DNA of 64,000 bases from Macrostomum lignano (Eukaryota). Under the pieces are notes generated by a model. The model did not search any database and was not told the DNA's origin. It was given only the letters and a program-made list of their open reading frames with translations. Shown in pieces: positions 30,001-62,999 of this stretch (positions are counted from its first letter, which is position 1; each line of letters begins with the position of its first letter). Location: positions 361,335-425,334 of the forward strand of contig NIVC01000033.1 in assembly GCA_002269645.1 (NCBI GenBank), read 5' to 3'. The translations under genes and the position numbers were made by a program.

Positions 30001-33000
30001 GATAAGCATAAATATTGTTGCTGCCATTGCTGCATCGTTCGCTTCCGAGCGCCTCTGACGGGCACCTTGACGGCTTGCAGCTTCCCGAGGATGCAACCGC
30101 ATCGTGACGTCAGTAGCAGCAGCCACTGCAACTGCCCAAGCAGCAGTAGCAGCAGCCGCGGCAGCAGCTCTAGCAGCAACTGCTTCAGCTAAAGTGCAGT
30201 TTAGCCAGTCAATCCTTTCTTTATTAAAGCCAAGCGCTTAGCCAGACCCGTAGAATCTTTAGTCCTGTTACTGCCATGACTGTGCACCAGCGCCGAAATG
30301 ATCTTGTCAGAATGGCCACGCTGACGGTGGACGGAGGCGAGTCCCTCGACGACAGCGCAGGCAGAGGCGGCCCCGGCGGTGTCAGCATCGGCGGTGGGGG
30401 CGCTGGCGGTGACTCTAAGAACGCCTCGCTGCGTAACATCGCACGCCGGACGCTGAACATGGGCCTGCCTGGGCTCGGCAACACGCCCACCCGCTCGCTG
30501 TGCATCTTCTCCGAGGAGAACATCATCCGGAAGTACGCCAAGATCATCATCGAGTGGGGATATCCTTTTATCGAAGCTGCTGTTTCTAGGAGCGGGGCTT
30601 ATTTGAGGCTGTTTTGGCGCCCATTGGAGACCAAGTGACGTCATAGGGCGTCATGCGTGTTATTTGATGGGCTGGCAGAAACCCAAAGGACTCCCTGGAA
30701 CCCTGGACATATTCTCATGGTGCATTACTCTTTAGCAGCTATCAGGGTATCTCTTAGACAGACAGTGTGTGAAGCCAAGCCTTAACTGTGCGTTTGATTT
30801 TTGCTTTTTTTCCTTAACCAAATCAAATCAAAATGCGTCGCTCGCCTGCACGCCATTCGAGTACATGGTGCTGCTGACTATCATTGCGAATTGCGTGGTG
30901 CTCGGCGCTGAAGAGCACCTGCCCAGGGGCGATAAAACTCCACTGTCCACCAAGCTGGTGAGTAGTAATCGTTTTTAGGGACGTTGCTATGCCATAGAGT
31001 ATCCGGTACTGTAGAGTGATGCGTTATCAAACTCATGTCTTTTAAGGGGCTGCTATCAGTCTCACCATTCACGTTGATAGATGCACAGATAAACAGCCAT
31101 CAGGTTATGGTGCCTTCCTGTCCTTTTCTAGGCAGACTTTCAGCAGTTTTAAATGAGAAAAATGTCCTTTAGTGGGCGATCAGATAATCCTTATCCTTGA
31201 TCAGCACACTGATCCGTCTGGGAATGAGGCAGGATTTCAATTTTCACCCCATCGACATTTCCCCAGCTAGACGGCCGCTTTTCTGTAGAATAACAAAATA
31301 AATATCTGATTATGGGTAACTCAGTCGCGCTCCCTCGCCATCAACCCAAAGGACATGACGGAGCGCTACTTCCTGGGCATCTTCTGCGTGGAAGCCCTCT
31401 TAAAAATTGTCGCTCTGGGCTTCGTGCTCCACAAAGGCGCCTACCTGCGCAACATCTGGAACATCATGGACTTCGTTGTCGTCGTCACGGGGTAAGACGG
31501 ACGAAATTTAAATGAAAAAATATAAATGCATTTCGTTGCTGAAGATTGTGCGCGAGTGTGTCTGAGTTAATATTAAAGTTCAATAGCTCGTATATAGCGC
31601 TATTTCAACTCACGTGGGGAAATATTTTCACGTAAACTGATTGATCATATTTCAGGTATGACTCAGTGGCAGGCTTATACGTTAACTAGTCACCTTTAGT
31701 GCAGATTTTTTACCTTATTTTTCAGGATTCAGAATTATTTTTCTCGCTAAAATTTACGATCTAGTAGGAACGCTATCAAAAGTGCATTCATGATTACATT
31801 CGTACGACGCTCAAAGCATCCGGGAAACGAGGTAAACCGGTACCCAACTTGCATGACGTCGAAGAACTTTTTGGCACATAAGTTTAGAAGCCACCTCTTA
31901 CTGCATGAACACATCCCTTACTGCCAGTAAGATGATTGTCTCTGATTCAAAATGATTGCTTTTTGTCGGATTAACTTTACTCTTATTATATGCACTACTT
32001 GAATCTGCACTGTTATTTTCTCTGCTTTGCTTTTACTTGGGAGCGCAACTCCTTTAGGTAATTTTCCCATTACGAGTAAACATCGAGTGGGGTCACAGAG
32101 GGCTTCTAGCTGCTTCCTGTCAGTAAATAGCAGAGCATACCGCATAGGTTAATACAACAGACGGATTTCTCTGCACTCAGCTTACTTAAACTAAGCCCAA
32201 CCCCCATCGACGAAGCATGAGCATGAGTAATGCAGAGCACAGCAATGACACGCATGCGCCAACAACTCACGGAGTTAGAGTTGCCTATCCGCCAGCAAGC
32301 CCGCATTCAGAAATTCCGGGCCCGCTTTTTTAGAAGAAAATCAACCCGTAGAGAGAGTTATACTCGCCAGAATTTTTATTAAGTGCCCGCAAGCTCGGAC
32401 CGATTCAACCCGCTGCCTTACCGCACAGCAAATTCACCGTAGATCGGTGGCACCCAGCAGCTTTCACTGAATTTTAGGCTGCTAAAGAATGCACCCGGTC
32501 CAAGCCTCATGCTGTCCGCTGTCACTTTCCGCTTGTTGCAGGCTGTTAGCGTTTATCCTGCCAACCTTTGACCAGCCGGCACTGAGGGCGCTGAGAGTGC
32601 TGAGGCCCCTCAAGCTGGTTACAGGGTTTGAGAGTAAGTCTACCCGTCAGTACTGAGACGTTTGTTAAATTAGTTTCAATGGCCAACCGTCCGCTTTGCT
32701 GAGCACTTTAGTTTAAAGCAAAGCCATGCAGAGCTCACTCAGCCAGTCAGACACCCGAACCCAAATCACTTTGCCATTCACAACTTGAGTGTGCTGAGAG
32801 ACCCCTCACTTGTGTGCTACGGCACCTCAGCTAGTAATTTCCAAACTTAAGGTTTGTTTACCTCGTTTGGATGCCTACATAAACTCCGAAAGTCTTGTAA
32901 GCATCCCCTACAGTGCTCAGGCTGACAACTTAGGCTATAGAGAAAAGGCCATCATCAGAGAAGTCAGTGTCTTTTATCAAGCTTTCCTGAACCTGCACAA

Positions 33001-62999: not shown

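Follow-up and report, generated by a model that had tools for sequence, protein, structure and literature searches.

The 64,000-nucleotide (nt) stretch of contig NIVC01000033.1 analysed here (Macrostomum lignano, assembly GCA_002269645.1; hereafter the window, to whose positions coordinates refer unless another locus is named) carries a Cav2-type alpha-1 channel gene whose tandem duplicated exons are probably spliced in a mutually exclusive fashion to give a diversity of products, with three exon clusters functional. Under this model, each mRNA would take one exon from each of three pairs—IS4a or IS4b, IIS4a or IIS4b, and IIPa or IIPb—and two further candidate exons, IIS4c and IIIPa, would, if used, raise the number of combinations to 24. 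A preliminary description of this DNA had arrived at the same 24, and while its arithmetic (2 × 3 × 2 × 2) stands, the figure presupposes that all copies are in use; the comparisons presented below support 8 combinations, with 24 possible. Mutually exclusive exon clusters are already known in four-domain channels, and what appears to be new is their presence at these positions of a Cav2, with three of the clusters well supported.

The clusters lie at the IS3b-S4, IIS3b-S4, II filter-P2-S6 and III turret-P1-filter segments and comprise two, three, two and two exons, respectively (Table 1). All nine exons of the four paralogous sets described earlier were located, with the open frames, matching phases and splice sites attributed to them, and the limits proposed for the array coincide exactly with the start of IS4a (32542) and the end of IIIPb (60957). 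All copies are bounded by an AG acceptor and, but for IIS4a with its GC donor, by a GT donor; the copies inside each cluster are identical in codon phase and lie on the same strand, in order, between the same flanking constitutive exons. A "canonical" set (IS4b, IIS4a, IIPb, IIIPb) splices to an open frame, as does a "divergent" set (IS4a, IIS4c, IIPa, IIIPa). When exon peptides were searched against the window with tblastn, copies within a cluster recovered one another at a similarity well beyond chance (E = 5e-6 for IS4a/b, 3e-10 to 7e-13 for the IIS4 pairs, 4e-12 for IIPa/b and 2e-11 for IIIPa/b), and the same search with every exon peptide found no extra copies of the remaining exons. When mean identity is scored against eight non-flatworm Cav2 proteins, three clusters have their divergent copy upstream, as had been noticed at the outset (IS4a 0.48 vs. 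IS4b 0.73; IIPa 0.52 vs. IIPb 0.70; IIIPa 0.44 vs. IIIPb 0.52), and at IIS4 the first of the three copies is the most canonical (0.68, 0.61 and 0.58 for IIS4a, IIS4b and IIS4c).

The gene is classed as a Cav2 alpha-1 (i.e., non-L-type, high-voltage-activated), as first proposed, because of its Ion_trans repeats, the ranking of Cav2 above Cav1 and Cav3 among solved structures, and its AID and filter motifs. Specifically, the model joins 28 coding exons in frame from the N-terminal Met via repeats I–III to IVS1, and the modelled protein has three matches to Pfam Ion_trans (PF00520); repeats I–III are complete, IVS1 lies in the window, and repeat IV and the C-terminus lie beyond it. About two further II-III linker exons are partly modelled (45706–45823 and one starting at 45219). 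The closest structures in a PDB search are Cav2.1 (1113 bits), Cav2.2 (1099) and Cav2.3 (1044), as against ~800 for Cav1 and ~470 for Cav3, and the best database matches of the product are Cav2/cac orthologues. A beta-subunit-binding AID motif is present in the I-II linker (exon 37201–37376), and the filter motifs read TMEGW in domain I, TGEDW or TSEDW in domain II and TGEGW in domain III for any choice of exons.

Table 1. Positions in the window of the alternative exons, their constitutive neighbours and associated splicing features (a slash marks the exon–intron boundary).
Feature	Position	Strand	Remarks
IS4a, alternative IS3b-S4 exon	32542-32633	+	92 nt
IS4b, canonical IS3b-S4 exon	33780-33880	+	101 nt; all S4 charges
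IIS4a, canonical IIS3b-S4 exon	39081-39193	+	113 nt; GC donor AG/gcaagt
IIS4b, alternative IIS3b-S4 exon	39820-39932	+	113 nt; own signature peptide
IIS4c, third IIS3b-S4 exon	40999-41111	+	113 nt; putative
IIPa, alternative II filter-P2-S6 exon	42305-42428	+	124 nt; TSEDW; U12-type donor gtatcctt
IIPb, canonical II filter-P2-S6 exon	43107-43224	+	118 nt; TGEDW; U12-type donor gtatcctt
IIIPa, alternative III turret-P1-filter exon	60417-60569	+	153 nt; TTGEGWN; putative
IIIPb, canonical III turret-P1-filter exon	60814-60957	+	144 nt; STGEGWP
Candidate U12 branch site TCCTTAAC (43509-43516) and 3' splice site common to the IIPa and IIPb donors	43509-43564	+	consensus match
Intron 1, AT-AC U12-type	30560-30851	+	atatcctt donor; branch tccttaac at 30811; acceptor cac/G
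Cav2-type alpha-1 gene	30276-63000	+	N-terminus to IVS1; continues past window end
Constitutive IS2-S3a exon, 5' of IS4 cluster	31352-31491	+	gene model
Constitutive IS4-S5 linker and IS5 exon, 3' of IS4 cluster	35823-35969	+	gene model
Constitutive IIS2-S3a exon, 5' of IIS4 cluster	38719-38831	+	gene model
Constitutive IIS4-S5 and IIS5 exon, 3' of IIS4 cluster	41682-41813	+	gene model
Constitutive II turret and P1 exon, 5' of II-pore cluster	42093-42165	+	U2-type donor CAG/gtgagc
Constitutive IIS6-end exon, 3' of II-pore cluster	43565-43665	+	gene model
Constitutive IIIS5 exon, 5' of III-pore cluster	59797-59957	+	gene model
Constitutive IIIP2-S6 exon, 3' of III-pore cluster	62196-62397	+	gene model

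A second Macrostomum Cav2 gene and constraint on the exons

The top database match of the gene product is another M. lignano protein, P0001 (BOX15_Mlig012532g2; 73% identity), whose locus, L001, lies on a different contig. The window gene and the L001 product are mutual closest relatives in a small neighbour-joining tree built from constant domain II sequence; their exons share 75–90% DNA identity while their introns are unalignable, and their constant exons give a ratio of non-synonymous to synonymous divergence (dN/dS) of 0.049 at dS ~1. On these comparisons, M. lignano has two old Cav2 alpha-1 paralogues, of which the window gene is one. L001 holds IS4a/b, IIS4a/b and IIPa/b in the same order as the window gene; IIS4c was not found there, and the III-pore exon is single, with no IIIPa. 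As the IS4, IIS4 and II-pore arrangement is common to both loci, the three exon duplications would predate the duplication of the gene.

The dN/dS comparison called for in the preliminary description was made between these paralogues. Pooled over IS4a, IS4b, IIS4a, IIS4b and IIPb, the ratio is 0.032 (IIPa excluded), with single-exon values of 0.029 for IS4b, 0.038 for IIS4a and 0.011 for IIPb, and IS4a is 93% identical to its L001 copy in amino acids. IIPa gives 0.37 against its L001 orthologue, with TSEDW and the upper S6 sequence conserved. By this measure, the five exons are constrained like constitutive exons, and IIPa less so.

Such constraint bears on a reading in which one exon per cluster is used and every extra copy is a pseudo-exon, which we consider very improbable. 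IS4a, IIS4b and IIPa, the copies that it would discard, are kept in the paralogue across dS ~1 at dN/dS ≤0.37 (0.03 pooled without IIPa), and parasitic-flatworm Cav2 genes have IS4a and IIS4b as their working exons (see below). P0001, moreover, includes a single member of each of these clusters (IS4b, IIS4b and IIPa), while neodermatan genes use the IIPb type, so that both kinds of II-pore exon are coding. RNA-seq data, processed with StringTie, TACO and TransDecoder, underlie the Mlig_3_7 gene set (PMC5730564), and because P0001 belongs, by its gene naming scheme, to that set, we infer that it is transcript-derived.

The duplicated exons might alternatively be an assembly artefact (i.e., collapsed or misjoined haplotypes or homeologues) or part of an interleaved second gene, a concern in a hidden polyploid with a redundant assembly, Mlig_3_7 (PMC5730564). 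This explanation is hardly credible here: the 55–66% identity among copies is far below the ≥95% of assembly duplicates; the copies share strand, order, flanking constitutive exons and phases; and the arrangement is repeated on a second contig, with the IS4 pair found in other phyla as well. The repetition of the same IS4, IIS4 and II-pore arrangement in L001 also bears out the original view that the exon sets are tandem paralogues within one gene. The two exons of every pair have persisted as coding sequence, which excludes pseudo-exons, an interleaved paralogue and artefact for three clusters; for these, mutually exclusive splicing remains the preferred account.

Mutual exclusivity and the two putative exons

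Frame and splice-site type could both restrict each mRNA to a single copy. All exons of the IS4 and IIS4 clusters are 3n + 2 nt long, and double inclusion leads to a premature stop and skipping to a frame shift. At the II-pore cluster, the same U12-type donor, gtatcctt, follows IIPa and IIPb alike (gtatcctt and gtatccta in L001), the intron 5' of the cluster is U2-type, and a single candidate U12 branch site with its 3' splice site lies downstream of both exons. The gene contains just two exact copies of the branch sequence, TCCTTAAC, both of them 5' of the acceptor of a U12-donor intron, and the TCCTTRAY motif is absent between IIPa and IIPb (42429–43106 scanned). Because both exons have U12 donors and there is a single U12 branch and 3' site, the IIPa-IIPb intron would be a U12-5'/U2-3' hybrid. 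Such an intron would be removable by neither spliceosome, leaving one II-pore exon per mRNA, and so should enforce exclusivity at this cluster. The whole II-pore splice layout is repeated in L001, and homologues of the II-pore U12 intron in Lottia and Dicrocoelium gene 2 are likewise U12-type, from which it would follow that the II-pore exon duplication copied the donor of a minor intron.

The JNK genes provide a precedent, in which exons 6a and 6b are kept mutually exclusive via a U12-5'/U2-3' hybrid intron (PMC1874599). JNK (MAPK8/9/10) and the window gene have in common a U12 donor on both exons, one downstream U12 branch site and acceptor, and a U2-type upstream intron. They differ in gene family, in that the U12 intron of the window gene is an ancestral minor intron of Cav channels, in the unusually long distance from branch to 3' splice site in the window gene, and in that the II-pore mechanism is predicted from sequence evidence only, good as that evidence is. 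The II-pore cluster would thus represent a natural second case of the JNK type, arising by duplication of an exon bordering a minor intron. Its operation would depend on minor splicing, for which intron 1 also provides evidence: this AT-AC U12-type intron is conserved in L001 (10225–10437), with the branch site ~29–33 nt from the 3' splice site. The conservation of two U12 introns across dS ~1 argues that the minor splicing system is active in M. lignano.

Two further observations concern the IIS4 and II-pore clusters. The GC donor of IIS4a (AG/gcaagt; window 39194, L001 20373) is the same in both paralogues despite their unalignable introns, as expected of a regulated weak site. A 20-nt inverted repeat, 80% complementary, joins 43051–43070, which is 5' of the IIPb acceptor, to 43539–43558, which is 5' of the shared U12 3' site; pairing of the two would loop out IIPb, although this repeat, the only suggestive one among the cluster regions, may be due to chance.

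Several results weigh against mutually exclusive splicing as the full account of this locus, and the first of these concern mechanism. U12 branch sites usually lie 10–26 nt from the 3' splice site; in M. lignano the spacing is 29–48 nt (for the II-pore intron, 48 in the window and 30 in L001). The III-pore exons are multiples of 3 in length with a 244-nt U2-type intron between them, and no sequence feature enforcing III-pore exclusivity was found when frame, intron type and RNA pairing were checked. Likewise, a search for docking/selector RNA pairing by inverted repeats in the four cluster regions, the three-exon IIS4 cluster included, yielded no one-to-many pairs. More generally, we infer mutual exclusivity from frame, splice-site type and one RNA-derived paralogue model. 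On the side of expression, word-indexed searches (targets ~0.6–1.75x the query length) together with an exhaustive search returned no protein for the window gene other than P0121 (UniProt A0A1I8FJ67), predicted on an older assembly of M. lignano, and the NCBI annotation of the contig calls no gene over exons E18 and E19. Finally, the changes private to IIIPa (18 non-synonymous and 6 synonymous; ratio of non-synonymous to synonymous change, pN/pS, 0.70; P = 0.29) and to IIS4c (18 and 7; pN/pS 0.90; P = 0.48) fit neutrality, when counted by parsimony with saturated synonymous sites that inflate pN/pS.

These last values set IIS4c and IIIPa apart, with the signal of purifying selection weakening from a dN/dS of 0.032 for the five pooled exons and 0.37 for IIPa to a pN/pS of 0.70 for IIIPa and 0.90 for IIS4c. 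In a more restrictive reading, to which we give a little less than an even chance, three working clusters yield 2 × 2 × 2 = 8 isoforms and IIS4c and/or IIIPa are relics still open by chance. It is consistent with the lack of both exons in L001 and with private changes that are not depleted in non-synonymous substitutions, as against pN/pS values of 0.06–0.29 on the sister branches (0.26 on the IIIPb branch, P = 0.004)—though saturation of synonymous sites inflates the parsimony ratios. Frames would also stay open under random substitution with a probability of 0.14–0.16 for IIIPa and 0.33–0.41 for IIS4c. Neither exon had a database protein match in the word-indexed searches, whose negatives are weak evidence given the target lengths stated above; an exhaustive HMMER search of proteins with IIIPa found only its own gene's read-through prediction, P0121, which contains IIIPa and IIIPb and hence both pore loops. 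P0121 is a mis-annotation due to the tandem exons and is no evidence that IIIPa is used. Furthermore, IIIPa is altered within the otherwise near-invariant GEGWP motif.

Against relic status, both exons have retained AG/GT sites and their exact phase. IIS4c has no indel in its 113 nt, keeps all S4 charges with an S3-S4 linker reading YRRDA, and has 10 of its 11 private amino acid changes outside S4 (P = 0.057). IIIPa has indels in frame only, P-helix substitutions of a largely conservative kind (Met to Leu, Leu to Ile, Ser to Thr) and an intact filter Glu, and the tandem III-pore exons of an unrelated Cav2-like contig, L009 (see below), indicate that such pairs recur. We also considered strong constraint on IIS4c and IIIPa on the strength of a neutrality simulation (0/20,000), and rejected it, as a constrained partner branch alone could yield the signal. 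IIS4c and IIIPa are best described as younger or faster-evolving exons specific to the window gene, with about an even chance each of being used exons or decaying duplicates. The most inclusive reading, in which all nine exons are used to give up to 24 variants per gene, in two genes, by combinatorial and possibly cell-type-coordinated choice, is unlikely on present evidence.

Exon types in other animals

The preliminary description had suggested looking for each exon in other flatworm and spiralian loci, and this search recovered IS4a in Lottia and Intoshia and the IIS4a and IIS4b types in Neodermata. IS4a-type sequence is recognisable by FDQPALRA(L/I), with Pro, Gly or Ala in place of the outermost S4 arginine (R1), and all IS4a-type exons found are 92 nt long. 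Orthologues with AG...GTAAG-like sites are present in Intoshia, in Lottia (two copies) and on contigs L005 and L006. In the Intoshia locus, a 92-nt a-type exon is followed by a b-type exon, and the same order is seen on the lophotrochozoan contig L005 (ENA ERZ26858995). In the limpet Lottia gigantea (L008, KB202014.1), two a-type exons (6301–6392 and 6568–6659) precede a canonical 104-nt exon (7549–7652), and the annotated Cav2 protein uses only the last of the three. IS4a-type sequence is also the IS4 of the Intoshia protein and of every annotated neodermatan Cav2 protein recovered (schistosome, Dicrocoelium, cestode). On this distribution, the IS4a/b pair is an old lophotrochozoan feature and not peculiar to the window gene, and we found no description of the lophotrochozoan IS4a exon in the literature. 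Contig L005 also has two tandem IS6-like exons (8158–8235 and 8600–8662, one reading NYIYFLTIIIIGSFFILNLVL) that are reminiscent of vertebrate Cav1.2 exons 8/8a.

In Neodermata, for which the Schistocephalus and Dicrocoelium genomic loci were used, the same IS4a, IIS4a and IIS4b exon types occur, but with one exon per position and in separate genes. Gene 1 has IS4a-, IIS4a- and IIPb-type exons, and gene 2 has IIS4b- and IIPb-type exons, the IIS4b-type signature being the sole IIS4 of the second gene. No IS4b-type exon, only the a-type, was present in the gene 1 locus of the tapeworm Schistocephalus, the only neodermatan locus examinable for it. As the IIS4a and IIS4b types reside in separate neodermatan genes, the IIS4 duplication would be at least as old as the Macrostomum/Neodermata split, and the counterpart of alternative IIS4 splicing in Macrostomum would be two separate genes in parasitic flatworms. 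Protein searches and the neodermatan and lophotrochozoan loci gave no IIPa-type or IIIPa-type sequence outside M. lignano. A parallel to the III-pore cluster is on L009 (JGI metagenome 3300023220), where tandem III turret-filter exons (527–670, 144 nt; 716–856, 141 nt) lie 45 nt apart, the second with STEGW in place of TGEGW, upstream of a Macrostomum-like IIIS6 exon; its exons have identities of 0.35–0.51 to IIIPa and IIIPb, which do not settle orthology.

Drosophila cacophony offers the closest known arrangement at IS4, with mutually exclusive IS4A and IS4B exons of 99 nt each, the choice of which sets activation voltage and synaptic localisation (PMC11828482). The fly gene and the window gene are alike in channel class (Cav2), in the segment concerned (IS3b-S4) and in having two tandem exons that differ in S4 charge content. 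However, the fly exons are both 99 nt whereas those of the window gene are 92 and 101 nt, with different phase and boundaries; both insect exons keep R1 and differ in SRIPS vs. SGIPS, whereas the lophotrochozoan a-type is without R1 and ends in TGFES. The fly also lacks the IIS4, II-pore and III-pore clusters, and its I-II linker pair is absent from the window gene. As fly and lophotrochozoan exons have no diagnostic residues in common, orthology is unsupported, and the two IS4 pairs were likely duplicated independently.

Predicted channel properties and the surrounding sequence

The exon types differ in residues that would be expected to matter for channel function. IS4a carries Pro in place of R1 and an S3-S4 segment shortened by 3 residues, differs where the S4-S5 linker begins and ends in VTGFE(S). 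Since the alternative IS4 exons of Drosophila cac shift activation voltage (PMC11828482), IS4a should, by analogy, alter activation voltage and kinetics. The IIS4 variants keep all charges and differ in S3b and the S3-S4 linker, and from general channel biology they should tune gating. In IIPa, the residue before the filter Glu changes from Gly to Ser, the P2-S6 loop is acidic and Gly-containing, and upper S6 is changed, with the conserved S6 Asn replaced by Arg in the window gene; again from channel biology, IIPa should tune conductance, block or inactivation and leave the EEEE locus as it is. The putative exon IIIPa would rewrite the domain III turret and add one Cys (AQCFRY).

Analogy had earlier been drawn to invertebrate channels in which alternative turret or pore exons change ion selectivity, namely Cav3 (exon 12a/12b) and NALCN (exon 15 or 31 a/b), where the switch is between Na and Ca (PMC4436565). 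As in those channels of lophotrochozoans, tandem alternative exons here recode part of the pore loop of a four-domain channel. However, the NALCN exons change the filter Glu to Lys and the Cav3 exons change a cysteine-rich domain II turret (PMC4436565), whereas in the window gene IIPa differs at the pre-filter residue, in the outer loop and in upper S6, and IIIPa in the turret of domain III. None of the four pore exons loses the filter Glu (e.g., TSEDW, TTGEGW), and both II-pore exons keep the domain II Asp that has been linked to Ca selectivity (PMC4436565). With the EEEE locus and this Asp unchanged, a selectivity switch of the NALCN/Cav3 type is not supported, and the analogy is weak. We found no description in the literature of a Cav2 with alternative IIS3b-S4, II filter-S6 or III turret-filter exons. 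In vertebrates, mutually exclusive exons are familiar from Cav1.2 (8/8a at IS6, 21/22 at IIIS2 and 31/32 at IVS3) and Nav1 (5N/5A at IS3-S4). These, too, place mutually exclusive transmembrane-segment exons in one gene, giving combinatorial isoforms with altered gating or pharmacology, and the difference lies in the subfamilies and the segments.

Most invertebrates have a single Cav2 gene for all synapses, and the locus bears on the question of how invertebrate presynaptic calcium entry is diversified. In Drosophila, one alternative IS4 pair decides activation voltage and active-zone targeting (PMC11828482). The exons described here point to a second, older IS4 pair in a mollusc, an orthonectid and flatworms, one copy of which lacks the outermost gating charge; that this R1-less IS4 is the sole form in the examined parasitic-flatworm locus and in the annotated proteins recovered bears on parasite physiology and pharmacology. 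They further suggest that a Cav2 gene can hold mutually exclusive exons for the second voltage sensor and for pore-lining segments, and that splicing and gene duplication can be interchangeable, with IIS4a and IIS4b being alternative exons in Macrostomum and separate genes in Neodermata. If all nine exons were used, the gene would also specify channels with re-engineered outer pores (IIPa, IIIPa) differing from the canonical presynaptic channel in conductance, block, alpha2-delta coupling or inactivation; splicing in a free-living flatworm would parallel gene duplication and exon loss in parasites; and R1-less IS4a would represent an ancient lophotrochozoan channel mode turned sole mode in parasites. 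M. lignano is amenable to transgenesis.

Several minor features of the gene model and its surroundings were also observed. For an exon of the I-II linker there are two possible in-frame acceptors separated by 27 nt, at 37447 (tctgtag/TG) and 37474 (gtcgcag/AT); the paralogue protein aligns only from just 5' of the latter, so that the start of this exon is either uncertain or alternative. The II-III linker exon ends at 45823 with the donor gtgagtct, directly after whose gtga (i.e., 4 bases into the intron) begins a 2.5-kb (GTCT)n microsatellite (45828–48351); similar TCTG and AGAT arrays lie at 11378–12535 and 8848–9250. Between the II-III linker exon and IIIS1, the intron also holds an intact Ty3/gypsy-type long terminal repeat (LTR) retrotransposon (49606–53930), whose open reading frame (ORF; 49820–53722) encodes a 1300-amino-acid gag-pol that includes RVT_1, RNase H and integrase domains; this ORF and 2 kb to either side of it match NIVC01000033.1 at 100% identity. 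The LTRs of the element (49606–49818 and 53718–53930) are 213 nt each and 100% identical, and it interrupts a 30-bp minisatellite (48746–49604, resuming at 53931–54080); because of the identical LTRs and the position within the minisatellite, the insertion looks very recent. Upstream of the gene, 347–7182 contains two retroelement copies with reverse-transcriptase-like ORFs (347–1363 and 4206–6014), each followed by an ORF (1641–2573 and 6220–7182, respectively) that ends in a tyrosine-recombinase-like motif (HSLRRG.A....G.....I...GDWRSD...Y); judged by eye, these elements look DIRS-like.

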